A stretch of 64,000 nt of DNA, from assembly GCA_950097015.1 (NCBI GenBank), contig CATNEN010000011.1, positions 4,712,001 through 4,776,000 of the forward strand. The letters are read 5' to 3'. Below the pieces are notes generated by a model that saw only the letters and a program-made list of their open reading frames with translations, was not told the origin of the DNA and did no database searches. This document shows, one piece after another, positions 4,492-47,412 of the stretch. Positions within the stretch are counted from its first letter, which is position 1; every line of letters begins with the position of its first letter. This DNA is from Macrostomum hystrix (lineage: Eukaryota > Animalia > Platyhelminthes). A program made the translations under genes and the position numbers.

Positions 4492-7062
4492 TCAATCGAA
4501 GCTGCCGAAGCTGCTCCAGCTGCCGCCGCTGCTCCAGCTGCCTAGCGACGACCAAGATCCGTGACGCCAGCCCATGCCGTGACCCCAGCCGTGGCCCCAA
4601 CCGCCAAACGCTTTATGAGCCACGTAGGCGCCAGCCGCAGCGCCGGCCAGTCCCATAGCGGCATTGCGCATTCCTTTGTTCTTCTTTTTCTTCTGCTTCA
4701 CAACTACAACATGCTGCGGCTGCTGACCGTAAGGATAAGCTGAAGCGCCCGAAGCCTGCGGATATTGCTGTGGATAGCGCTGCTGCTGCTGCTGATGCTG
4801 ATATGGCTGCATAGGATAGCCTACAGCTCCACCCGGTGGGCCGAAGTAAGCTCCGGCCCCTCCAGGCGGAGCATAGGTCGGAGGGGGCGGCGGAGGCGGT
4901 CCGCTGTTGCGCGGATAGCCAGGAGACGGGCCGCCCGGCTGACCTGGCATTCCGGGCATCGGCATCGGCGGCCCTGCGCCGCCAATGTTGAAACCGATTG
5001 GCGGCGGGGCTCCACCCGGACCACCTGGCGGTGCGCCGCCGTACGGCGCGCCTCCATAAGGAGCGCCGGGACCTGCAGGACCGCCGTAAGGGCCAGGAGC
5101 GCCATACGGTGCGCCGTAAGGGGCTCCATAGGGAGCGCCCCCAGCAGCACCGTAGGGCGCACCCTGCGGCGGACCTTGCGGGGGTCCAGCAGTGGCAGAG
5201 TATGGCGGTGGCGCTGGTGCATTTACGGGGTAGCTGGAAGAAGCCTGTTGAATAAATATAATTGATTGTTAATAACTGCAATACTGCAGAAAAGAATTGA
5301 AACCTAAGCAAACGTCTAGCGAGCGCAAGGATAGAAAACATTTTCCTCGTATGAGAACGAGATTCGAACTTCAGACCTCTCAGTTTCGAGCCCTAAGCTC
5401 TGACCACTGGAGCGAAGCTATTTTCCCCCCAAAATCCCGAGATAATTGCAAGGATAAAATAGAATCCCAACGTATTGTGGAAACTGACCAGGCCTCAAAG
5501 AGTCCAAAACAGAAACCAACGTCCACTTCCGACAGTCGCCCCAAGTTCCCTAAGCTAGAATCCGCGACCTTCGTGCGACTGCCGAGGCCACACTCGTGGC
5601 GCGAACAAAAGACATTGCATGACTTATCATGCGATTTCGCGATCAACGAGGGCTAAACACACCCCCTACAAGGCACAGTGAGTGTATATGTCTGGGTTAA
5701 ACAAATCAGCGCATATGTACACAGCCTGTGCAAGTTGCCTGCTTGTACTGGTTGGTCAGCGGAATGGGCAGATTTGCTTCGGGGGGGGGGTGAGTGGCAG
5801 AGCAGTTTAACGAGTTGGCCTCTCGCACTAAGGACCTGAGCTCGATTCCGCGGCGAGGCCACATTCATTTGGTGCGCAACCGCGGAGAGAATGCTTGGTG
5901 GCTTGTTGTGCAATTTACGTCCTCGAGGACCAACCTCCAAGGCACGATTAGAAAGTCAGGGCAGATGTACACACCTGTGTGAGCGTGTGCCTGCGTACGG
6001 TATCTGTGTGCGTGTGTGCTCAGGAGTCAGCGAAATGGGCAGAATTGCCTCCTCGCTGGCTGCGGGTCTAGTGTCACCAAATTATGTGCCATTGCCCGCA
6101 GCCTTCCTGCAATTATTATAATTCTCATACCTGCACTGGCTGATGCTGCTGATGCTGCTCCTGCTGCGGCGGTGGCGGTAGAGTGCTAGAAATAGCCGAC
6201 ATCCAGTCGTCCATCTCTTTATCGTTGCCAAACAGAAAGTAAGAAATTCTGGCCTCCCTGCTGGCCTGCTGAGGCACAGCTAAGAGGTGCCGAACCCGCT
6301 CCTTGTCCACCACCGGCTTGAAGGGCAGTCGCTGCGTCACGGGGCCCAGAGCCAGGAAGTTGCAGACGTCGCGCAGAATGACAGTCCGATTTGGCGCTGA
6401 TTGACCCTGCTTGTCAAACCAGGAGAAGCTGCTGTCAGACCGCAGCACAGCGAACACTCGCTTCCACTGGCTGCCCATTAGGCCGCCTTTGCGATTAAGA
6501 ATAGAGAAAAATGAAAAAAAGGTTGTAGACTGCGGCATCGATTGACTTAAACAGTAGAGAAACAATGAGGCATCAAGTGAAACTGGACAGCGGAGAGATG
6601 AGATAGGGGAGAGATGAGACAGGAGAGAGATGAGACAAGGAAGAGATGAGACAGGAGAGAGATGAGACAGCAGAGAGATGAGACAGGGGAGAGATGAGAC
6701 TGGAGAGAGATGAGACAGGGAAGAGATGAGACAAGAGAGAGATGAGACAAGGGAGAGATGAGACAAGGGAGAGATGAGATAGGGAAGAGATGAGACTGGA
6801 GAGAGATGAGTCTGGGAAGAGATGAGAAAGAGGAGAGAAGACAGTGGAAAGATAAAGCAGTAGATACACAAAACCAGAACTACCTAAGCTTGATTAAAGA
6901 GCCCACAAAAAATTATAATAGGCAACAGGAGCAAACTTTAATAACTCTATTTTACTATCCAATAACTAGCAACAGGTAAAAACATAGGACTACAAGCAAT
7001 TATAGCAATTTTAGCTTACCTGTGTATTTGCTTAGCTCTCCTTGTTTAATAATTAAAGCCAT
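4492..7062 (-). CDS. PH-domain protein with Pro/Gly/Tyr/Gln low-complexity tail (PLEKHB/evectin-like); exons 7020..7062, 6131..6486, 4492..5244; 383 aa
   Basis: Spliced frame is continuous through GT-AG junctions (phase 1, then 0): MALIIKQGELSKYT|GGLMGSQWKRVFAVLRSDSSFSWFDK...FLFGNDKEMDDWMSAISS (PH fold, C-terminal helix Trp)...PVQ|ASSSYPVNAPAPPPY...GAPYG repeats...GLAGAAAGAYVAHKAFGGWG...FGSFD*. Confidence 0.85.
5345..5412 (-). mobile_element. tRNA-like SINE head fragment
   Basis: Reverse strand reads gctccagtggtcagagcttagggctcgaaactgagaggtctgaagttcgaatctc (A-box-like TGGTCAGAGC, B-box GTTCGAATC). No complete cloverleaf. Confidence 0.5.
5560..6122 (+). mobile_element. Two tandem SINE family B copies (older 5560-5780, younger 5785-6122) in intron 2 of the PH gene
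   Basis: Repeated body ...gtcagcggaatgggcaga; second head tgagtggcagagcagtttaacgagttggcc..gagctcgattccgcggcgaggcc. The TTA tail ends a few bases from the splice donor at 6130. Confidence 0.65.
6580..6835. repeat. Minisatellite (GAGAGATGAGAC-core, ~17 bp), same family as 49955-50325 and 60690-61140 in reverse orientation
   Basis: Visible tandem GGAGAGATGAGACA units in intron 1 of the PH gene. The overlapping LSHLSPVSS ORFs are repeat translations. Confidence 0.9.
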
Positions 7063-9519: not shown

Positions 9520-9780
9520 ATATAATAATAATAATTGATTACACCTGCCCCTATGGGGCCAGGTGTAATGCCGACAGCACAGCCGCAGCTATTGCGTGGC
9601 GCACAGCTGTTCAGTCCATGGACTGGGGGGACGCCACACCTCCCCTCAATTATCCAAGCTAATGCTGGTACCCATTTAACAACTGGGTGAACTGAAGCCA
9701 TGTAGAGTCTTGCTAAAGGACACAAATTGTTCCTTCACGACCTTCAAGTCGTGAGTCCGACGCTCTAACCACATGCTACA
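9520..9780 (-). mobile_element. tRNA-derived SINE family A, full-length with perfect 13-bp TSD
   Basis: CTCCGATGCTAAA at 9507-9519 and 9781-9793. The 5' end tgtagcatgtggttagagcgtcggactcacgacttgaaggtc is tRNA-like and the 3' tail is (TTA)n. Body matches 47134-47412, 33330-33515 and 45460-45575. Confidence 0.9.
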
Positions 9781-10004: not shown

Positions 10005-11716
10005 TTAACGAATCCAAGTTGGCTTAGCCAAGCACCAGTGTTAAGTGCGTTCAGTTGCAGCACGGTTAGCTGACCCTGGACAATAGCGAAGCACTCACTC
10101 TATATTATTGCTCGTAGGTTGTTGGGTGCATTAAGACCCTGACCTCCGATTATCGGACGCTGAAAGTTTTCTCCGGTCGCCAAGTATGTAGCGTTAAACT
10201 CGTTGAAAGACAGCTGAGTCAGACTGCCTCCGTAGAAGTGAAGCGAATTTTCGCCGCGAGAAACGATCCCAAAGCTGACAAACAGTCCACTGGAATTTGT
10301 TGGGAAGCTTTGAAATCCACAGTTATGGAAATGCGGGGAATTTGGCATCGTGTATTTATACACCATCGGGTTTGATATACGCTGACAGGCCGTTTAACTC
10401 AGTAGAGGAGCTAAGAAGACGAAAAACCATGTTGTAGCTTGCTCTGAAAGGCAAAAAAACCCAAGACCATCAGTTTAATGCGGCACCAATTCTTGTTAAT
10501 TACAATCTGTTTTGTTTTTTTACTAGCTCAAGTCAATCAAAATGTCATCCCAAATGATACGCGCGAGAAAAATTTTGGCTCCCTGCACCACCTCATTGAC
10601 TCCGCTTACATTCCGTTGTGCTTGTAATTGGTGCGAAAGAAGACCGTCAAATTTGGGGTCGGCAGGAATAGACCTTCAATGTCAGGAGCTGTGTTCAATT
10701 CGACAAAAGTGCCAACGCTTCCACTCACGAACACTCCCATGGATTTGTTGAGTGGAGCCGACACCAGCACCAAAGTGTGCGGATTCTGGGGCACAGGTGC
10801 CAGGTTGAAGGGGCCAACACGGAAGTGGTACAGAATCCGCAGTGAGTTCTCTGAGATGCTGCTGGGCAGGTCGGCCTGTGAGCTGCGGTTAATAATAATA
10901 ATAATATTAAAAATAGCTGGATGGCTGCGGACAATGGCACATCAATTGGTGACATTTGACCTGCAGCCAGTGAGGACGCGATTCTGCCCATTCCACTGAC
11001 TACTAAGCACTCACGCACACAGATACCGTTGCAGCCAGTGAGGACACAATTCTGCCCATTCCACTGACTACTAAGCACTCGAGCACACGGATACCGTTGC
11101 AGCCAGTGAGGACGCGATTCTGCCCATTCCACTGACTACTAAGCACTCACGCACACAGATACCGTACGCAGGCACACGCTCACACATTGGTGTATTGAAC
11201 TTCTTATCGTCGAGTGTACACTTTCACTGTGCCTTAGAGGTTGGCCCTCAAAGGGCGTAAGTTGCACGACAAGGCCCCAACCCTTCTCTCCGCGTCTGTG
11301 CCCCAATCTAATATGGCCTCGCCGTGGAGTCGAATTTAGAGACCTTGGCGCGACAGGCAAACGCGTTAACTGCACTGCCACCGACCGCCGAGCTGCGGTT
11401 GTGAGATCGCACGAAATCAATGTACTTAGGGCTGCGACTGAGACTAAAAAAATCGTGTCACACATCAGACACTCACAGTGCTGGAACTGGCCAAGCCTCT
11501 GTCTGTTCACAAACGAGTCGCATTGTCCACCGTACAGCCATGCAGTGAGGAAGGCCTCGGCAGACGCCAGCAGACACAGCTGAGACATCATGGTGGCAGC
11601 TGCGCAGCTCTGCCTCGTGTGACAGCTCAGCACACAGCCAGCGATGCTGCGGTCGGTCAGTTGGTGAGTCGGCAGCTTCCACACTCCGTCGCTGGGCAGC
11701 TCGGCAGACGGACAGA
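10005..11716 (-). pseudogene. Pseudogenised paralog (copy A) of the PAN-LamG gene at 16334
   Basis: Exon 1 part is near-identical to 16440-16682 but lacks the signal-peptide region. Exon 2 (10610-10879) has a 1-bp deletion and a SINE at its acceptor. Exon 3 (from 10443) is divergent, with a frameshift at PDGV*/YKYT, an in-frame TAG before ECFAIVQGQL, and a terminal frameshift. Confidence 0.85.
10891..11389 (-). mobile_element. tRNA-derived SINE family B, full-length with 11-bp TSD and an internal ~66-bp segment in about 3 copies
   Basis: GAGCTGCGGTT at 10880-10890 and 11390-11400. 5' end GGCGGTCGGTGGCAGTGCAG (A box) ...TTCGACTCC (B box); (TTA)n tail at 10891-10908. Confidence 0.9.
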
Positions 11717-16333: not shown

Positions 16334-17610
16334 ATGGGTATTAGCAAACGAATTTTCATTTACCAAGCCATGCTTCTAGGACTTGGGATAGGAGAAGTCA
16401 GACCTTTTACCACCGCCACGACCAACTACGAGAGGCTGCAGGTCTGTCCGTCTACCGACCTGCCCGCTGACGGAGTGTGGAAGCTGCCGACTCACCAGCT
16501 GACCGACCGCAGCATCGCTGGCTGTGTGCTGAGCTGCCACACGAGGCAGAGCTGCGCAGCTGCCACCATGATGTCTCAGCTGTGTCTGCTGGCGTCTGCC
16601 GAGGCCTTCCTCACTGCATGGCTGTACGGTGGACAATGCGACTCGTTTGTGAACAGACAGAGGCTTGGCCAGTTCCAGCACTGTGAGTGTCTGATGTGTG
16701 ACATGATTTTTCTAGTCTCAGTCGCAGCCTTGAGTACATTGATTTCGTGCGATCTCACAACCGAAGCTTACACGGCCGACCTGCCCAGCAGCATCTCAGA
16801 GAGCTCACTGCGGATTCTGTACCACTTCCGTGTTGGCCCCTTCAACCTGGCACCTGTGCGCCAGAATCCGCACACTCCGGTGCTGGTGTCGGCTCCGCTC
16901 AACAAGTCCATGGGAGTGTTCGTGGCCGGCAACCTAGCGTCCTACGTGGATGTTAGCACGGCTGATGGCATCGAGGATCTGTTCGTGCCGGAGCCCAATG
17001 TGACGATTCTGATGAGTGCCCAGCTGGACTTCGTGAGCTCGTGAGCGAATACAGCTTTTTATTTGGTGCTCTGGCATGACGCACCTAATCAAATATATAT
17101 ATTGATTTTGTTGATTATTAGGCCTGCTAGAATTTTTAATCAAGTACTAAAATTGAATTCAATTTCAGGGCTGAGGTTAACGTAGTTTATCGAATAAAGG
17201 AATGCTTTTCCAATAGGTTTGGGAGCATGGTTGTCTCAAAGATTGAAAATCGGCTCGCCTACCGCAGCGTGCTTCCTGATGGCAAGGGAAAAGTCTTTGC
17301 GGCATCTCCAGGTAGTTTTCAATCGACTACCGGAGACAGCCACACGGCGTTTGGATTTACGATGCCTGGTCAATCTATCTGTTCGTGGTACTATAAAGGC
17401 AATCTTGAGCCAATTCCTGTGATCTTTGCTGAGTCAGTCTACAATAACAGCGCGGCAAACTTTCAGTGCCTCAGGTTCGGCGGGGTCGCATCTACGAATT
17501 CGATCAACTCCATGAAGGGCTGGATCGAGTGCTTTGTTGTCGGGCAAGGACAATTCAATTTGAATCAGATGAACGATCTGAGCAGCTGGTGCAGAAGAAA
17601 GCAAATCTAA
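16334..17610 (+). CDS. Secreted PAN/apple-domain + concanavalin-A/LamG-like domain protein (copy C, intact); exons 16334..16682, 16767..17040, 17169..17610; 354 aa
   Basis: Hydrophobic N-terminus; PAN-like Cys pattern (GCVLSCHTRQSCAAA..LCLL..QC); GT-AG introns of 84 and 128 bp give a continuous frame (phases 1 and 2). The beta-rich C-terminus GVFVAG..TILM..WYYKG..LRFGG..MKGWIECF resembles LamG/pentraxin-type folds. Confidence 0.75.
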
Positions 17611-28079: not shown

Positions 28080-28700
28080 TGCTCTCTCACATGTCTCTTT
28101 CCGCCCTCTACGAAGTCTCTTTCCGCTCTCTCCCATGTCTCCTTCCGCTCTTTACTGTCTCTTTCCGCTCTCTACGAAGCCTCTTTCCGCTCTCTACGAA
28201 GTCTCTTTCCGCTCTCTCCCATGTCTCCTTCCGCTCTTTACCATGTCTCTTTCCGCTCTCTACGAAGTCACGAAGTCTCTTTCCGCCCTCTTCGAAGTCT
28301 CTTTCCGCCCTCTACGAAGTCTCTTTCCGCTCTCTACGAAGTCTCTTTCCGCTCTCTCCCATGTCTCCTTCCGCTCTTTACCATGTCTCCTTCCGCTCTT
28401 TACCATGTCTCCTTCCGCTCTTTATCATGTCTCCTTTCGCTCTTTACCATGTTTCTTTCCGCTCTTTACCATGTCTCCTTCCGCTCTTTACCATGTCTCC
28501 TTCCGCTCTTTACCATGTCTCCTTTCGCTCTTTACCATGTCTCCTTTCGCTCTTTACCATGTTTCTTTCCGCTCTCTACGAAGTCTCTTTCCACCCTCTA
28601 CAAAGTCTCTTTCCACTCTCTACGAAGTCTCTTTCCGCTCTCTCCAATGTCTCCTTCCGCTCTTTACCATGTCTGTTTCCGCTCTCTCACAGTTCTCTTT
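28080..28700. repeat. 22-bp composite minisatellite (TCTTTCCGCTCTCTACGAAGTC / TCCTTCCGCTCTTTACCATGTC)
   Basis: Two interleaved variant units. The overlapping SFRSL ORFs are repeat artefacts. Confidence 0.9.
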
Positions 28701-29182
28701 ACACGCTCTCTTCACTGTATTTTTACGCTCTCTACCATCTCTCTCTCCACCGTCTCTTCCTCCCTCTATTATCTCGCCTTTCGCTCTCTCCCGCTCCCAC
28801 TGCAGCGGAGCATCTGTGCAACTCTCCCCAGGCAGCTGAGTCCCCTGCTGAATACTCGTAATTGCCAAAGCAGGAGACACGATGCATCACATTGGTTAGC
28901 TTTGCTAGTAGGATGCCCCATTTTCTGATGTGGCCTCTCTGCACATTCGACGAAATGACGCGACCACCTTGGATATTGGTACTGTCGTAAAGTACTCGTA
29001 AGGACATTAGGGACGAACTATAAATCATAAATACATTCGTAGCCGTTGTCAAAACTACAGCCAATCAGGAAAACTGGTTGATATGCTACTACGCATATGT
29101 TCCGTACTACCCATGTTTAAAACACAGCTAATCTCAGCACCAGTTGTCTTGTCAGAATCTTCAAAGTACAGAAGTTTCGCAT

Positions 29183-31365: not shown

Positions 31366-31983
31366 AGATTATTTGTCAGATCGGTAGAGGTTGCTACTAG
31401 ATACAATAAGTTTCGGGGCTGGGTTTTGCTAGTCTGAAAAAAGTATACTCGAGCCCTTTTAATTTTCCTCCGTTTAATGTTCATCACTGTAACATCTCCC
31501 TTTAACGGGATATTGTTTGTCTACGATTTTCACACTGTTTCCGTTAAAGTAGAATTTACCTGCTTATTTGACACTTTTGTTAGCAAGCCTTGATTAAATT
31601 AGTTCTTGACAAATGTCATTACGTTTTTCAAAGCCATTTTCTGCATTTGATCCAATAATTTCCTGAGCTTTCGACAAACAAACAATGAGAAGTCCATTCC
31701 GTTGATTGAATTCACAAAGAGCAACTACGGAAGCAAATATGAGGAACAGCATCTGCCAATACTAACTGCATTGTTGGTTCAGCTATAGGGGGTTAACATT
31801 GAGCCTGTGTGACAGTGTCCATCGCAATAATTTATTGGGGAAGATTGTGACAGATCATGATCGCAGAGGCATATAAAGACCCCCGAGTCAATAAGGCTTT
31901 TAACAGCTTTGCGATTTGCTGCTAACAGCCTTGTTAAAAAACCACTATTTTTTATCACCGCAAACTGTCAAGTCCATTCTGGT

Positions 31984-33318
31984 ATGCTGCATTACACAGG
32001 TCTAGCTTTAGTCCTGCTAATTTTTGGTCCGTTCAACCACTGCACCTGCTTTACCCAGCTTCAAAGAGACTTTGAATCGGAGTTGCATGAGTACCTTGCA
32101 AACAACATCAGCGGCTATAGTCCCTGGCTGCGACCTACGCTAGACCCCATGGCGGTGGTGAGCGTGTCTGTCATTGCATCCATAAGCCAGATTATATCGG
32201 TGGACAGTGCTGAGCAGAGCGTGAAAATTGCTTCCATGTTTTTTGCCACCTGGTATGAGGAGCGTCTTGTCTGGGATCCGGCAATGTTCGGCAACATCTC
32301 CGTGGTTGACTGGGACAGCAGTCGCGTTTGGTTTCCAGTGATATTTGTCTACAACGGCGTGGGCGAGAACCAGCTGTTGAGTCCGCAGTTCCCTGCCTAC
32401 ATCACATCGGTGTCGGTCAACAAGTCTGTGGTTTCCGCAGTCTGGAAACAGAAGTGGGACTTCAGCTGCCAATTCAATATGAGACGCTTTCCGTTTGATC
32501 GGCACACATGTGACATGCAGCTGATGATGAATGACCAGGGCAGAGGGGGTTATAAAATCCTTCCTAGAGAGGGCAACCTTCTAATGGATCCGTCGGTTAA
32601 GTACAATGAGTTATCTGCGTACGCTAACAACAATGAATGGATAATGCATAACCTAAGCACTTTTGTGCGCTATCAATACTTTCAAATATTTGACGGCGTG
32701 CAACCAGTGGCGCTGCCTATTTACGTGATGCGCATGGAGATTGAGCGAGTCTCCGCCTACTACATGCTGAACGTCGTGACGCCTCTGCTGCTGCTGACGC
32801 TGCTGCAGGTGCTCGTCTTCTTCGTGCCCGTCGAGTCCGGCGAGAAGCTGAGCTTTGGCATCACCATCATGCTGAGCTACACCGTGTTCCTGCTGCTGCT
32901 CGACGGAATCCTGCCAAAGTCGCAGTCGACGCCAGCCGTGGCCTCCTTCATCACCGCCGCCATGACGCTGTCGACAATGTCGCTGCTGCTCACGTCGGTT
33001 ATCATTCGCTTCCACTTCGCTCCGAAGACGTCACCGATGCCGATATGTCTTCGCTGCGTGTTCGTGAGCGGCCTGGGCCGCCTCCTGTGCGTTCAGCGAC
33101 CCGGCGGCGAAAGTAGGACAATAATTCGACCAAAGGAAGTCACAGGTGACGATGCCAGTAAGACAGTCGGGGATATTGGTACGAAGCCCCCAGAGTCAGA
33201 CGCAATCCGCTCCGACTGGCAGGTGGCTGCGGCAGCTCTGGAGCGGCTCTGCATTCTGCTGGGCTGCCCCGCAACAGCTGCGGTTCTGCTGGCTTTCCTC
33301 ATCGTGCCGCTAGCTTGA
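31984..33318 (+). CDS. Intronless Cys-loop ligand-gated ion channel subunit, divergent nAChR-like (444 aa from ATG 31984)
   Basis: Signal peptide; W..ERLVWDP; WFPVIFVYN; Cys-loop CQFNMRRFPFDRHTC; NNEW; four TM helices with GEKLSFGITIMLSYTVFLLLL (cation-type M2); short M3-M4 loop ending DWQVAAAALERLC. No vicinal Cys in loop C and no loop B Trp. Confidence 0.93.
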   Translation: MLHYTGLALVLLIFGPFNHCTCFTQLQRDFESELHEYLANNISGYSPWLRPTLDPMAVVSVSVIASISQIISVDSAEQSVKIASMFFATWYEERLVWDPAMFGNISVVDWDSSRVWFPVIFVYNGVGENQLLSPQFPAYITSVSVNKSVVSAVWKQKWDFSCQFNMRRFPFDRHTCDMQLMMNDQGRGGYKILPREGNLLMDPSVKYNELSAYANNNEWIMHNLSTFVRYQYFQIFDGVQPVALPIYVMRMEIERVSAYYMLNVVTPLLLLTLLQVLVFFVPVESGEKLSFGITIMLSYTVFLLLLDGILPKSQSTPAVASFITAAMTLSTMSLLLTSVIIRFHFAPKTSPMPICLRCVFVSGLGRLLCVQRPGGESRTIIRPKEVTGDDASKTVGDIGTKPPESDAIRSDWQVAAAALERLCILLGCPATAAVLLAFLIVPLA

Positions 33319-33329
33319 CGATGACGAAT

Positions 33330-33515
33330 AGGAGCCTGTGTGGCCGACAGCACGGCTGCAAACGGCTGTTCAGTCCATGGACTGGGGGGACGCCACACCC
33401 ACCCTCAATCACCCCAGCTAATGCTGGTGCCCATTTAAAAGCTGGGTGAACTGTAGCAATGCAGAGTTAAGTTGCTCCAGCGGAGTTGGGAATCGAACCG
33501 CCGACTTTCGCGCAA
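33330..33515 (-). mobile_element. SINE family A copy immediately 3' of the channel stop codon
   Basis: ctgttcagtccatggactggggggacgccacac..aatgctggtgcccatttaa..ggtgaactg matches 9608-9700; B-box complement GGGAATCGAACC. Confidence 0.8.
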
Positions 33516-34367
33516 GCGTGTAATAATGTCCAAATTTAACATCGAGCAGCTGCCAGCTTCCACTGTACTTCAGTTCGCCTAGCCGTGAAATGTGTTAACA
33601 GCAACAGTTGGGGTAGAAACTAGTGCGTGTTTAGCGGCCTGTTCAGTCCACTCACTAAACTGCCAGCTCTAGAACCTCTAGAGCCTCTAGAAGTGACGCT
33701 CGCAATAGCTTGACTACTTGTTTTACAATAGGCCCAACTGGTGTAATGTGCCCTTTCAGAATAATAGCCCGTCTATAAAGTTCCTACTCTTTCAATTACC
33801 TTTATAATATTCTTCTGCTTCAGGGTTTAAACATCTATTAGTCAACAAATCCAGGCTTAATATTTTTTTTTGTTTTATTTGTTTGAGCTGTTAGACTGTT
33901 GTGCAGGGGGGGAAAATGTGGCTAATTCCTAGGTAATTAAAGCTTGTTTTCACGAGCAAACAAATTGGAAAGAGATTTTTTTATTTGATCGGACTTGGCT
34001 ATCTTTATCTAATAATCTGCCTAGCAGTTTTGCAATGCAAACGCAGAATTTACGGCATTCTTGTAAGTCGTACTAATGTACTGACAACAAAAATTACCCT
34101 TACAAATTATCTAACCTCTGTCAACAATGGCTGTTGAGCCAATTTGTCCTATTCAGCAAACAAACAGAAATTAATATGCCAAAAGGCAATGTCAAACAAC
34201 TGCGAGCCTCAGCAAATAGTGTCAGTTAGACCATGATTGATATTCTCTTCAGGAATACATTGTTAAACTAGCTTCGCTGTGCGACAACTGACGCCCAGTA
34301 CGATGCTGACGACCAAAGTCTCATTGTTGTAAGCAGATCGAAGCATTTTAGCAAAGCACCGGCTGGA

Positions 34368-34525
34368 ATGCAGTTTTTCGCTGTCGCGATGCTCCTGTGT
34401 GTTAAAATCTACCGCAGCCACGGGGCAGACTGCTCAAGACGGTAGGGACTATCAGGCGGAACTGCTCAAGTACCTCAGAAACAACATCACCGACTACAGT
34501 CCGACGCTGCGACCGTGCCTCGTGA
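34368..34525 (+). pseudogene. N-terminal fragment of a second Cys-loop channel paralog
   Basis: MQFFAVAMLLCV, a frameshift, then LKSTAATGQTAQDGRDYQAELLKYLRNNITDYSPTLRP, aligning to QRDFESELHEYLANNISGYSPWLRP; truncated thereafter. Confidence 0.75.
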
Positions 34526-35593
34526 CAAAATTGTGCATGGTTATTTGTCAAATGCGCCTCCGTGGGCTTTCTACGGTAGCAAGCATCTAAATAAACAAAG
34601 TTTCATTTTATTAAGTAAAATTAGTCATATTAAATGGTATTAAATATAGTCTTTATTACAGTCGGTACATTGTATTTCAAACAGATTTTATTGTCACTGC
34701 GATAAAGTTTTGCAGGCCAGATAGCAATTATGATTGGAAAATATTGTGTTTTGTCTGCCGAGGGTTGAAGTGAGTGATACTGATAACATGGGACTTGAAT
34801 TCGATAAGATAAGCACTTTGGGCATACGAGTAAAAGGTATAACAACGTAAATACGAGTATTTTTTCTGTGAACAAGTTGTAAAAACTAAAGCTGAAAACG
34901 GGCATGTTGTGGAACTCTATATATAATCGTTGAAATTAAAATAACAAAAGCACAACTTGATCATTTAGGATAAATAAGGTGAAAAGCTAATAATTGTAAC
35001 GACAATGCTAGATATCAAAGCAAGAGTCCTGATTCTGTTAAATCAAATAGCACAGCATTACACTAAAAGAATGATTAAAAAGTGAGTCAAATTAATTATA
35101 AAAATAGATTTCTAGCTCGTTCCCACAGCTATGGGAACCCACAATAACTAAAAAGCTCAGGATTAAAGAACATAGATAGAAAATGTCATGTATAGCAATT
35201 GAAAATATTTTGGTCTGCACTCGATTCATTTGTTTTAATCTGCACCAAAATTTATCCTTTTTCTTACTGTGGTGCTTATCGGTGTGTAATTACCAAGTGG
35301 TATATTGGTATAGTCCAAATTGGTTTACTGACCAGAATTCCACGAAGATTATAACACCGGAAAATGGTGATATTTATGATTACAGAAAATACTTATTTAC
35401 CTTCCCGTGTATTCATTGTCGTTAGTTCAATTGTTTTGACCAATGTGCAAACTGTTTTCTAAAGTCCTGATAAAAACTATCATTTAATTATTCCCTCTAT
35501 CTGATGGTTATTCAATTTTGGCGCGAATTTAAACATTGAAAACGAGGTTGGTTATTGAGTAGTAAAAAGTTCCTTTAGGAACTGCGCTGTGAC

Positions 35594-38500
35594 TTAATTG
35601 GCAGCACCAGCTCCACCGAACGGGTTCTTTGGTTCAACGGTGGTCACCATGCTTGCCAAGTGACCAGAACGGCCGTGACCGTTTGCTGATGAGCCCGGCG
35701 ACAGATGTGTGGGCATCGCCGGATGGGCGACACTGCTGACCGACTGCGGGCCGCGGCTTGCGGCAGCGGCTGACTGCGGGGCTCCGCGGTGACCCGTGTA
35801 GCCGGGTATGTCACTGGGACTGAGAAAGCAGGGTTTGGAAATAATTTTACTTTACTTGATGGTATGCAGAAATGGCGGGTGCCTGTGCGATGAGCGCTAG
35901 AAATGGGGTGGGTGTGCGATGAGGGCTAGAAATGCGGTGGTTGTGCGATGAGCGCTAGAAATGGGGTGGGTGTGCGATGAGCGCTAGAAATGGGGTGGGT
36001 GTGCGATGAGCGCTAGAAATGGGGTGGGTGTGCGATGAGCGCTAGAAATGGGGTGGGTGTGCGATGAGCGCTAGAAATGGGGTGGGTGTGCGATGAGGGC
36101 TAGAAATGGGGTGGGTGTGCGATGAGCGCTAGAAATGGGGTGGGTGTGCGATGAGCGCTAGAAATGGGGTGGGTGTGCGATGAGGGCTAGAAATGGGGTG
36201 GGTGTGGGATGAGCGCTAGAAATGGGGTGGGTGTGCGATGAGCGCTAGACATGGGGTGGGTGTGCGATGTGGGCTAGAAATGGGGTGGGTGTGCGATGAG
36301 CGCTAGAAATGGGGTGGGTGTGCGATGAGCGCTAGAAATGGGGTGGGTGTGCGATGAGGGCTAGAAATGGGGTGGTTGCGCGATGAGCGCTAGAAATGGG
36401 GTGGGTGTGCGATGAGGGCTAGAAATGGGGTGGGTGTGCGATGAGGGCTAGAAATGGGGTGGGTGTGCGATGAGCGCTAGAAATGGGGTGGGTGTGCGAT
36501 GAGGGCTAGAAATGGGGTGGGTGTGCGATGAGGGCTAGAAATGGGTTGGGTGTGCGATGAGGGCTAGAAATGGGGTGGGTGTGCGATGAGCGCTAGAAAT
36601 GGGGTGGGTGTGCGATGAGGGCTAGAAATGGGGTGGGTGTGCGATGAGGGCTAGAAATGGGGTGGGTGTGCGATGAGCGCTAGAAATGGGGTGGGTGTGC
36701 GATGAGGGCTAGAAATGGGGTGGGTGTGCGATGAGCGCTAGAAATGGGGTGGGTGTGCGATGAGCGCTAGAAATGGGGTGGGTGTGCGATGAGGGCTAGA
36801 AACGGGGTGGTTGTGCGATGAGTGCTAGAAACGGGGTGGGTGCTGGGGGCTAGAAATGGGGTGGGTGTGCGATGAGGGCTAGAAATAGGGTGGGTGGATG
36901 CTGGGGGCTAGAAATTCATGGGGTGGGTGGGTATGTGTTAAGCTCTAAAAATGGGGTGGGTGGCGGCTGGGGCTAGAAATGCATTGGGTAGGTGGGTGTG
37001 AGTTGAAGTCTAGAAATGGGGTGGGTGTCAGTTGAGGTCTAGAAATGGGGCCCGTGTGTGATGAGGTCTAAGAATGCATGGGGCGGGTGTGTGATGAGTG
37101 TAAGAAGTTGTCCTTAAAAGGCGCTCACGCTCCGCTGACTCCGAACTTTGGCTGGGGGTTGCGCAACACAGTGTAGGGTCGCAGAGGTTCGTGCGGATTG
37201 TCGATCTCGTCCGGATTGTCTGACCCAACGCAGCCAGAGTAGGTTGGCAGATGATCGGCTCGTCTGGTAGGGCTGCAGCTGTTGTTGGTGATCAGTTTTT
37301 TGTGTTAATAATCCTCACAAATTAATAGGTGTAATTAGGGATAATTCTGCTTTGATTCGGTACGACACTCACAAGGTGTAGGGTCGCTGCCTATTAAAAT
37401 AGTCCGGCCTGAGCTGCCTGAAGTCCCAAGTTAGTCCACGCTCCTGCGGTGTCATGTTCATGGCAGCAATATTATAAATGGCCAAGCTTTTTAGATAAAT
37501 TTTTGGTACTCGTTGGTTTCAGTATTTAAATTTCGACTGACACAGAAACCACATGTCAGCACTGAGAAATCCCCTTCTAGAGTGTGAAATCACCTGTTAC
37601 TTCAAGAAGAGGGAGAAATGACTTGCTGAGACTGAGAAATCACCTGTTAGACGGAGAAATCACCTGTTAGATAGAGAAATCACCTGTTAGACGGAGAAAT
37701 CACCTGTTAGATAGAGAAATCACCTGTTAGACGGAGAAATCACCTGCTAGATAGAGAAATCACCTGTTAGACGGAGAAATCACCTGTTAGATAGAGAAAT
37801 CACCTGTTAGACGGAGAAATCACCTGCTAGATAGAGAAATCACATGTTAGACGGAGAAATCACCTGCGAAAAGGAGAAATCACTTGCTAGAAGGAGAAAT
37901 CACTTGCTAGAAGGAGAAATCACATGTTAAAAAGTCACGTTAGAAAGAATAATCACCATTAAAAATCACATGATATACAGAAAAACTAATTATGACCTTT
38001 TGGGATAATCAATTATCTCCTGTCACCTGACATTAATCCACCTGACAAAGGAGAAATCGAAGCATTTCTTACCTCAGAGCACCAGGTCTTTGCCGGTGGC
38101 AGGGTCTTCTTCGTGTGATTTGTCAGCGAAACTGGGTCCGCGTGTGGCTCCAGGGTGTGCGTGGGCGGATAGCGCTTGTAGCCGCCTCTGGGCATGTCCT
38201 CAGCTGGCACAGCTTCGTAGGCGCTATTGAAAATTGAGTTTGCTTAGGTGCCAATTATTTGAGAAATGTGGGCGCCGCATTCTAAAAATCTCAAACCGCT
38301 TAAATATTTCACTCACGATTGCGTCGTGGATGTGTAGATGTACTTGTAGGCCAAACGGTCCCTCTCGGACAAGTCCGGCCGAGCCTTCGGCAGGTGGCAG
38401 AGAAGTGTCAGCTTCGCCGACTCGGGCGTCTGGTCGGAGCCGCTGGTCCAGCCGCCCTGCACGGCGCGGCTGTAGCCTGGTGTCACCAGTTTCTGGTGCA

Positions 38501-40463: not shown

Positions 40464-41085
40464 GATATCTCTCTGTACTCAGTGAGGGCTATTGTGCTCC
40501 TTGACAGTGATGGCCAGCGCATAGCAGCCAAGTATTATCCAGGCTCGGGGTCTGCTAGCTCCACCCCTGCCTTGTCCACTGCCAAGGAGCAGAGAGCTTT
40601 CGAGTGTCGCCTATTGAATAAAACATCAAAGAATCCCTCGGCTGATATTCTTATGTTCGAAGGGTTCACCTGCGTCTTCCGAACCAATGTCGATTTGTTG
40701 TTCTGTGTTCTAGGAGACACATCTGAGAATGAACTTTTTCTTAATAACGTACTCTACACCTTGTACGACGCTGTGTCCATCATATTGCGCAAGAATGTCG
40801 AGAAGCGCTCTCTACTGGAGTACCTTGATGTCATCTTTATACTTGTTGACGAACTATGCGACAATGGCGTTGTCATTGAGACGGATGCAAACCAGCTGGT
40901 GGCTCGAGTTGGCACACGAGTTATTGACGAGACTTCACCTATGGAGGGCTCCGTCACTCAGGTTGGTTTTAGGGAAACTGTGATTGGTTGGCATTGGCAT
41001 TTTTCTATAAAAGTAATATAATTAAAACAAATTTTAGGTTCTACAGCAGGCTTCGCAGCAATTTAAATGGGCCTTGCTAAAGTAA
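40464..41085 (+). CDS. COPZ1: Coatomer subunit zeta; exons 40464..40961 and 41038..41085; start-codon exon lies upstream and is not resolved
   Basis: DISLYSVRAIVLLDSDGQRIAAKYY..KEQRAFE..L..KT..NVDLLFCVLG..ENEL..RKNVEKRSLLE..VDELCDNGVVIETD..Q|VLQQASQQFKWALLK*, matching zeta-COP. 76-bp GT-AG intron. Confidence 0.93.
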
Positions 41086-47133: not shown

Positions 47134-47412
47134 GGGGTTGTAGCCTTGTGTTTAGAGCGTCGGACTCACGACTTGAAGGTCGGGCGTTCGATTCCCAACT
47201 CCACCGGAACAATCTGTATCATTAAGCAAGACGCTCACCTCTGCATTGCTTCAGTTCACAAAGGTGTTAAATGCGTACCAGCGTTAGCTGGGGTACTTGA
47301 GGGTAGGCCCAGTCCATGGACTGAACAGCAGTACGCGGCCTTCAGATGCGCCGCGCAATAGCTGCGGCTGTGCTGTCGGCTGCACATCTCACTCAATTGG
47401 GGCAGGTGTTAA
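47134..47412 (+). mobile_element. SINE family A copy
   Basis: tgtagccttgtgtttagagcgtcggactcacgacttgaaggtcgggcgttcgattccca (A and B boxes); body through cagtccatggactgaacag..gcaatagctgcggctgtgctgtcggc..ggggcaggtgt as in 9520-9780. Confidence 0.85.

Follow-up and report, generated by a model that had tools for sequence, protein, structure and literature searches.

The cephalopod chemotactile receptors (CRs) CRT1 and CRB1 (van Giesen 2020; Allard 2023; Kang 2023; cited in PMC11526382 and PMC10338036) are, as far as the citing papers relate, derived from nicotinic receptors, free of introns and devoid of acetylcholine residues, with a pocket that is more variable than the remainder of the protein, and the flatworm gene analysed here is like them in all of these features. 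The same papers describe the CRs as non-selective cation channels, and the flatworm gene is of the cation type as judged by its pore sequence. The two differ, however, in that the flatworm clade stands alone on a long branch, with only Macrostomum proteins as its nearest relatives, the likeness being a resemblance and not a shown descent, and in that the flatworm locus carries no large tandem array, having instead one intact gene and a stub of ~ 190 bp. CR structures were absent among the top 50 Foldseek matches of the flatworm protein, which were vertebrate nicotinic acetylcholine receptors (nAChRs).

Jiao et al. (2019, PMC6896357) described intron-free, tandemly duplicated expansions of nAChR-like genes in molluscs and annelids, and the words flatworm, Platyhelminthes and Macrostomum are absent from their paper. 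The flatworm locus is like these expansions in being lophotrochozoan, single-exon and very divergent, with a neighbouring duplicate, and the combination of a single exon with a neighbouring duplicate is compatible with an origin by retroposition or duplication and subsequent divergence. In contrast to the molluscan and annelid expansions, the flatworm clade is small, with about four members in public data, and the locus shows neither a poly(A) tract nor any other scar of a retrocopy. A further system for comparison is Alpo4 from the annelid Alvinella pompejana, a nicotinic-like receptor that is still an orphan, no ligand having been found despite screening (PMC10338036). Both Alpo4 and the flatworm protein are lophotrochozoan nicotinic-like orphans in which loop C lacks its Cys-Cys. 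They differ in the aromatic box: Alpo4 retains one made up of F103, W159, Y199, Y205 and W65 (PMC10338036), and in the flatworm protein the Trp residues of loops B and D are gone, as is the second Tyr of loop C.

The canonical nAChRs, comprising the alpha7/ACR-16 type and the heteromeric alpha/beta type, share with the flatworm protein the fold, the domain order, the Cys-loop, the GEK motif, the 9′ Leu and the pre-M4 motif, but are only 21–25% identical to it in the ligand-binding domain and differ from it in that acetylcholine residues are missing from both faces of the flatworm site. Within flatworms, the acetylcholine-gated chloride channels (ACCs) of Schistosoma, reportedly described by MacDonald in 2014, are likewise nicotinic-related Cys-loop subunits. 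The ACCs are anion-selective, with an M2 entry of the Pro-Ala-Arg type, whereas the flatworm protein described here has a cation-type E-S-G-E-K entry. Taken in this company, the gene is one more member of an already described class, the invertebrate orphan nicotinic-like channels, and is apparently unannotated.

The subunit, its binding loops and its pore

All coordinates are positions in the window, that is, the whole stretch of 64,000 nucleotides that was analysed, and refer to the + strand unless stated. The features of the locus are as follows, with the evidence for each in brackets.

31872 to 31877, + strand: TATAAA motif, a possible core promoter, ~ 107 bp 5′ of the ATG (sequence reading)
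31984 to 33318, + strand: complete single-exon coding sequence of a nicotinic-type Cys-loop channel subunit (open reading frame, translation, Pfam domains)
31984 to 32055, + strand: signal-peptide-like N terminus, amino acids 1–24 (hydrophobic stretch GLALVLLIFGPF)
32056 to 32745, + strand: extracellular ligand-binding domain, amino acids 25–254, with eroded acetylcholine-binding loops (alignments)
32467 to 32511, + strand: Cys-loop, C162-x13-C176 with FPFD (translation)
32746 to 33018, + strand: M1-M2-M3 pore module, amino acids 255–345 (alignment, translation, model)
33019 to 33207, + strand: short intracellular M3-M4 loop, amino acids 346–408 (alignment)
33208 to 33315, + strand: pre-M4 and M4 helix, amino acids 409–444, with conserved W412 and R421 (alignment, model)
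33354 to 33509, no strand assigned: short interspersed repeat copy, 36 nt past the stop codon, within the likely 3′ UTR (blastn)
34368 to 34554, + strand: dead remnant of the N-terminal part of a tandem paralog, ~ 60 residues (tblastn, clade HMM, reading frames)

The initial annotation had proposed an intronless open reading frame of 1335 bp, and this was borne out by one unbroken frame of 444 codons including no intron, running from the first in-frame ATG and encoding 444 amino acids, the length of 1335 bp including the stop codon. The translated protein matched the Pfam families Neur_chan_LBD (2e-27) and then Neur_chan_memb (3e-21), both over the gathering scores, and its closest relatives with a solved structure were the human alpha4 and alpha7 nAChR subunits (~ 1e-37). 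An AlphaFold2 model (mean pLDDT 86.9, pTM 0.78) displayed a beta-sandwich ectodomain and then four transmembrane helices at residues 257–278, 287–309, 318–344 and 411–443, with low pLDDT across approximately residues 370–410 of the M3-M4 region and with the signal-peptide-like N terminus modelled as a helix at low to moderate confidence. The best Foldseek matches were the alpha4beta2 and alpha7 nAChRs (TM-score ~ 0.8), and a search of the ESM Atlas for look-alikes returned generic nicotinic-type clusters only. By its domain order, Cys-loop and four-helix fold, the protein is a complete subunit of a Cys-loop pentameric ligand-gated ion channel.

The Cys-loop, which had been called intact, is indeed so (CQFNMRRFPFDRHTC, amino acids 162–176). 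Across 76 aligned relatives, C162, P170 and D172 were invariant and F169, F171 and C176 nearly invariant, and every column that was invariant or nearly so in these relatives was kept by the flatworm protein. The residues retained for folding and gating comprise the FPFD of the Cys-loop, Arg255 before M1, Pro267 in M1, the 9′ Leu of M2 and Pro311 between M2 and M3.

The acetylcholine-binding loops were compared in alignments to alpha4, alpha7, fish alpha7, urchin alpha7, ACR-16 and beta-like subunits. No Trp is present in loop B, in the stretch from the Cys-loop to the conserved EW (amino acids 177–217), as the initial annotation had claimed, and the alignment places at this point a seven-residue insertion that is common to the clade; the loop B insert (residues 186–199) was modelled by AlphaFold2 with a pLDDT below 50. 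The vicinal Cys-Cys of loop C is likewise absent, with Val-Gln at the aligned positions, and the second loop C Tyr is lost, the position of alpha7 Tyr195 being occupied by Leu244. The loop D Trp had been read as replaced by Phe. The Trp is absent, but the residue aligned to alpha7 Trp55 is Met85, which Phe86 and Phe87 adjoin, and the paralogs carry Ile, Phe or Tyr. The loss of the loop E Pro-Pro was upheld, the motif having been removed via a two-residue deletion. The loop A Tyr (Y123) is kept, and the aromatic box of the principal face is therefore incomplete, lacking the Trp of loop B and the second of the two Tyr residues of loop C. By these alignments, erosion of the acetylcholine site extends to the principal and the complementary face alike.

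The altered loops are also variable within the clade. Identity among its members was 20% in loop B and 15% in loop C, as against 46% in the scaffold, while canonical subunits at equal scaffold identity retained 66% in loop B and 33% in loop C. The seven-residue loop B insertion, an extended loop C and the deletion in loop E were present in all four clade members. Over the whole ligand-binding domain, the flatworm protein was 40% identical to the Macrostomum protein P0001 and 35% identical to P0002.

The pore module displayed the opposite behaviour, with an M1–M3 identity of 84% to P0001 and 76% to P0002 vs 35–46% to canonical subunits. The GEK codons lie at 32839–32847, and the pore entry E284-S-G-E287-K288 is of the cation type, in agreement with the earlier assignment. 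M2 carries Leu297 at 9′ and, as its outer acidic residue, D307 at 19′ in place of a Glu at 20′. The reading frame, domains and alignments together support the structural premise of the initial annotation, namely an intron-free, nicotinic-derived, cation-type subunit that has lost acetylcholine residues.

Phylogenetic position and the neighbouring remnant

The gene grouped with the Macrostomum proteins P0001, P0002 and P0028 at a support of 100/100, on a clade stem of 2.2–2.6 substitutions per site. A further entry, P0008, is a UniRef protein of Macrostomum lignano that is nearly identical to P0001. Whole-protein identity to the nearest paralogs was 46–48%, and an exhaustive search found nothing more than 36% identical outside the clade proteins. 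No identical or near-identical protein was found in public protein or assembly collections, where an exact look-up of P0001 in the assemblies was also blank. Word searches with the ligand-binding domain, as a region and as a separate piece, gave no matches, though they also missed P0001 and P0028.

Trees were built without cephalopod CR, Alpo4, ZAC, 5-HT3 and flatworm ACC sequences. The careful tree placed the gene outside the sampled alpha7/ACR-16 clade (100/99) and outside the sampled heteromeric alpha/beta clade (100/98), and nesting among canonical beta or non-alpha nAChR subunits, which would have spoken against the initial annotation, was thus not seen with respect to the sampled clades. 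In quick trees the clade had been separated, with high SH-aLRT, from a 'core' group of nAChRs, and this placement was dropped on account of the attachment having moved in the careful tree. Given this shift, and given that a placement as sister to the heteromeric alpha/beta clade was not rejected in an AU test (p 0.37), no attachment point is claimed among the nicotinic-type subunits.

A frameshifted N-terminal paralog had been reported ~ 1 kb downstream of the gene, and tblastn, the clade HMM and the reading frames all confirmed it. The remnant starts ~ 1.05 kb 3′ of the intact gene. It was matched by tblastn at 34435–34521 (59% identity over 29 amino acids, E 6e-6) and by the clade HMM at approximately 34417–34533 (E 1.3e-7). 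In order, it comprises a signal-peptide-like ATG (34368, MQFFAVAMLLCV...), a shift of one frame and a segment corresponding to helix alpha1 (~ 34417–34533), 3′ of which the similarity stops in AT-rich DNA. It is frameshifted since the ATG at 34368 sits in another frame and meets a stop at 34443–34445. Compared with the gene, the remnant is 64% identical over 87 nt, with mismatches of 9, 9 and 13 at the three codon positions, and its best 46 nt are 80% identical. The remnant was also considered as exon 1 of a multi-exon gene, a candidate dropped when no more exons or fragments were found by tblastn or by two HMMs in six frames.

Beyond the gene and the remnant, no further family fragment was found in the 64-kb window by tblastn with six queries or by the two HMMs in six frames. 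The tandem paralog of the initial annotation therefore stands as a remnant of ~ 190 bp and not as an array. We infer that a tandem duplicate once stood here and has decayed to this remnant.

Around the intact gene, no ATG occurs between the TATAAA motif and 31984, and a purine is present at –3 of the start ATG. The repeat past the stop codon has copies elsewhere in the window, detected by blastn at 9603–9708 (89% identity) and, in reverse orientation, at 47340–47175 (77–84%), and it had no Rfam or tRNA match.

Proposed function and alternative explanations

On balance, the sequence data argue for an intact and probably functional subunit at this locus, belonging to a small and very divergent clade of nicotinic-type cation channels that is confined to Macrostomum, presumably with a non-canonical ligand or stimulus. 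The lost residues predict that channels of the clade would not bind acetylcholine at the canonical orthosteric site. The subunit would assemble as homo- or heteropentamers with paralogs that carry a nearly identical pore module, and the resulting channel would be gated by a non-cholinergic ligand or stimulus acting at the diversified extracellular domain. Against this reading stand the repeat 36 nt past the stop, the dead adjacent copy and the lack of an identical protein within public collections. Note, too, that the pore conservation within the clade could be caused by gene conversion instead of functional co-assembly.

It could be that the protein is a peripheral contact chemoreceptor like the cephalopod CRs, in which a diversified pocket binds environmental molecules, for example hydrophobic ones, and opens a shared cation pore in sensory cells. 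This claim comes solely from analogy with those receptors, and we regard it as unlikely. The recipe is the same (a nicotinic-derived, intron-free cation channel with acetylcholine residues lost; PMC11526382, PMC10338036), the clade is lineage-restricted, and its binding loops are far less conserved than its scaffold and pore; however, relaxed constraint would account for the loop variability equally well, the clade has about four members in public data, this locus holds one gene and a stub in place of a large tandem array, and the comparable orphan receptor Alpo4 is still without a sensory role (PMC10338036). An extension of the same analogy, that nicotinic receptors may have been turned into environmental chemoreceptors a second time and independently in the Macrostomum clade, with a shared, homogenised cation pore and freely diversifying ligand-binding domains, is similarly doubtful. 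The absence of key residues from both faces is tolerated at accessory positions, and together with the conserved gating and pore elements and the sister position permitted by the AU test it would suit an accessory or structural subunit that binds no agonist itself, in a heteromer whose other subunits provide the agonist sites, whether for acetylcholine or for another transmitter. The site is absent from all four clade members, however, and the pore is shared within the clade and not with canonical subunits, which suggests that clade members co-assemble with one another; a purely accessory role is accordingly judged improbable.

Some of the same observations bear on whether the gene is active. 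A duplicate or retrocopy that is silent or was recently inactivated, unexpressed and decaying like its neighbour, would be in keeping with the repeat insertion directly past the stop codon, the frameshifted stub alongside and the blank searches for an identical or near-identical protein in public protein and assembly collections, and among bivalves intron-poor copies more often have no or low expression than intron-rich ones (Jiao et al., PMC6896357). Yet the 444-codon frame is open and the family-invariant residues are all kept despite a paralog identity of 46–48%, indicating long survival under constraint, and the TATA motif and the purine at –3 also speak against a silent copy, which we consider very unlikely.

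For the preferred reading of a functional subunit with a non-canonical ligand or stimulus, the conserved pore set against fast-diverging binding loops is a concrete handle for a ligand search, and Macrostomum lignano is a transgenic-capable model. Should the clade be expressed and gated by a ligand other than acetylcholine, the cephalopod pattern of repurposed transmitter receptors would extend to flatworms.

The channel gene and its predicted product

The nicotinic-type Cys-loop subunit gene (the query) was found in a stop-to-stop frame that opens at 31861 and has its first ATG at 31984. No upstream ATG was present between the TATAAA motif and this start codon.

31872–31877, plus strand: TATAAA motif, from reading of the sequence
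31984–33318, plus strand: channel gene coding sequence, one open frame of 444 codons plus stop

Pfam identified Neur_chan_LBD (2e-27) followed by Neur_chan_memb (3e-21), and the closest solved relatives were the human alpha4 and alpha7 nicotinic receptor chains (~1e-37), then the muscle alpha, beta, and delta chains, with 5-HT3A weaker (~1e-25). An AlphaFold2 model prepared from an alignment of 76 relatives (mean pLDDT 86.9, pTM 0.78) displayed a beta-sandwich and four long helices, as expected for the family, with pLDDT below 50 confined to residues 186–199, and the top 50 Foldseek matches to this model were all vertebrate or Torpedo nicotinic receptors (TM-scores ~0.8). Taken with the single frame, the domains, solved relatives, and predicted fold indicate that the gene encodes a complete, intronless nicotinic-type subunit.

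The initial annotation described an intact Cys-loop and a cation-type M2 entry, and both were recovered (C162-x13-C176 with FPFD; E-S-G-E-K); M2 also carries the 9′ Leu (L297) and an acidic residue, Asp307, at 19′. Its account of the acetylcholine site held in all but one detail. The loop B Trp is lost, with no Trp at all from the Cys-loop to the conserved Glu-Trp, and the loop carries a 7-residue insertion. Val-Gln replaces the vicinal Cys-Cys of alpha subunits in loop C, which is longer than in canonical subunits and in which Leu244 aligns with alpha7 Tyr195; the Pro-Pro of loop E is lost through a two-residue deletion. The loop D Trp is likewise gone; the Phe said to replace it was off by one, since Met85 is the aligned residue and two Phe adjoin it. 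The loop A Tyr (Y123) is retained. The acetylcholine pocket is thus eroded on the principal and complementary faces alike.

Relatives and phylogenetic placement

A word-index search returned only two close relatives, the Macrostomum proteins P0001 (48%) and P0002 (46%); next came subunits of hemichordates and sea urchins at ~30%. Because placement of the query hinges on closer kin being absent, an exhaustive profile search (E ≤ 0.001) was run, and from 8281 relatives only P0002, P0008 (60%, membrane half), and P0028 (36%, ligand-binding domain) stood out, all others having ≤ 33% identity. P0008 is Macrostomum lignano UniRef entry A0A1I8GG98 and matches P0001 almost exactly over the C-terminal half of the latter. 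The exact query protein was not on record in public collections. One further nicotinic-like protein, P0043 (403 amino acids, very divergent; L002:6001-7212), was noted in one uninterrupted ORF on a 57.8 kb ENA metagenome contig (ERZ26168041), so single-exon divergent nAChR-like genes are found elsewhere too.

Three trees were prepared (90-row quick, 44-row quick, and 44-row careful), the 44-row set leaving out extremely long branches, gene models fused to double length, and near-duplicates, and the sampling being without 5-HT3, ZAC, cephalopod chemotactile receptors, Alpo4, and flatworm ACC. The query, P0001, P0002, and P0028 formed one clade with 100/100 support in all three, on a stem of 2.2–2.6 substitutions per site. 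The alpha7/ACR-16 clade (fish and urchin alpha7, nematode ACR-16; 100/99) and the heteromeric alpha/beta clade (amphioxus and starfish beta-like; 100/98) both excluded this flatworm clade, which is therefore nested in neither. Nesting within canonical subunits, named initially as a refuting outcome, is excluded for these sampled clades. Stem attachment differed between quick and careful trees, and a tree joining the flatworm and heteromeric clades was not rejected by the AU test (delta lnL 2.6, p 0.37).

Sequence identity in the ligand-binding domain and in M1–M3
Query and P0001: 40%; 84%
Query and P0002: 35%; 76%
Fish alpha7 and beta-like subunit (canonical): 33%; 54%

The contrast between M1–M3 and the ligand-binding domain was steeper among clade paralogs than in canonical subunit pairs. 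The pore module M1–M3 of the query occupies 32746–33018. Across the four clade members, the non-loop scaffold of the ligand-binding domain averaged 46% identity, with 20% in loop B and 15% in loop C, whereas a canonical set of like scaffold identity (44%) kept 66% and 33%, respectively. The pocket loops thus drift or diversify, with the pore near constant. The loop B insertion, long loop C, and loop E deletion were common to all four members, so the acetylcholine site was lost long ago and throughout the clade.

The downstream stub and surrounding DNA

34435–34521, plus strand: stub core, 29 residues 59% identical to query residues 25–53 (E 6e-6)
33354–33509, 9603–9708, and 47175–47340 (reverse): short interspersed repeat, ~110–155 bp, three copies in the window, 77–89% identity
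30620–30760, 16885–17025, and 10661–10765 (reverse): second dispersed repeat family, 78–80% identity
35868–37098: 29-bp minisatellite, ~35 copies, 94% matches, strongly G-rich strand, GC skew 0.47
37608–37929: 20/40-bp tandem array
28091–28861, plus strand: long ORF, bHLH (NPAS4-type) motif
40482–41021, plus strand: single ORF, complete clathrin-adaptor small-chain domain
6125–6871, minus strand: long ORF, PH domain

The frameshifted N-terminal paralog reported downstream was confirmed, and the segment also matched an HMM of the close family (E 1.3e-7). Its start is signal-peptide-like (ATG 34368, MQFFAVAMLLCV...) and lies in a different frame from the mature N-terminus, reaching a stop at 34443–34445, which places a one-base frameshift between the two parts. 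Similarity fades beyond ~34554 in AT-rich DNA. At the DNA level, stub and channel gene were 64% identical over 87 aligned bases, with mismatches evenly spread by codon position (9/9/13). Six protein queries and two HMMs detected no further family pieces in any of the six frames of the 64 kb window. The stub is a long-dead relic of a tandem duplicate, with no array.

One copy of the interspersed repeat begins 36 nt past the channel gene stop codon. This repeat includes GGGAATCGAACC, a tRNA T-arm-like string, and ARAGORN and Rfam found no match on it. A copy of the second family precedes the channel gene by 1.2 kb, and the minisatellite and 20/40-bp array follow 1.3 kb after the stub. Judged by the neighbouring ORFs, the surroundings are unrelated ordinary genes and no receptor cluster.

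Interpretation and comparison with known systems

The most probable reading of these data makes the channel gene a live orphan subunit within a cation-channel clade restricted to Macrostomum. The subunit would assemble with itself or with paralogs, and acetylcholine at the classical site would not be what gates the channel. Function is argued for by an open frame long kept and by retention of all family-invariant residues at only 46–48% identity to the nearest paralogs. Caution comes from the missing protein record, the repeat close behind the stop codon, and the dead neighbouring copy. A silent, decaying copy is the least probable reading. It is somewhat less improbable, though still unlikely, that the product is a non-binding accessory subunit within a transmitter-gated heteromer. 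Equally doubtful is the contact chemoreceptor of the initial annotation, modelled on the cephalopod chemotactile receptors, which are nicotinic-derived, intron-free cation channels gated by hydrophobic ligands, with a pocket under diversifying selection (PMC11526382); the query is likewise intron-free with divergent pocket loops, and it stands in the window beside a single dead remnant.

For molluscs and annelids, an analysis that covered no flatworms described massive expansions of nAChR-like genes, mostly without introns, strongly divergent, and arranged in tandem, and ascribed them to retroposition plus tandem duplication (Jiao et al. 2019; PMC6896357). The annelid orphan Alpo4, whose ligand is still unknown, retains the aromatic box but has no Cys-Cys in loop C (De Gieter et al. 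2023; PMC10338036). For M. lignano, ligand-gated channel gene models were catalogued by McCusker et al. 2019 (PMC6881066), whose S1 table, as counted here, holds 48 models (15 GABA- or GluCl-type, 33 nAChR-like); orphan clades are not discussed there. Given the mollusc and annelid expansions, Alpo4, and the chemotactile receptors, the channel gene is a new, seemingly unannotated addition to an already described class of orphan channels.
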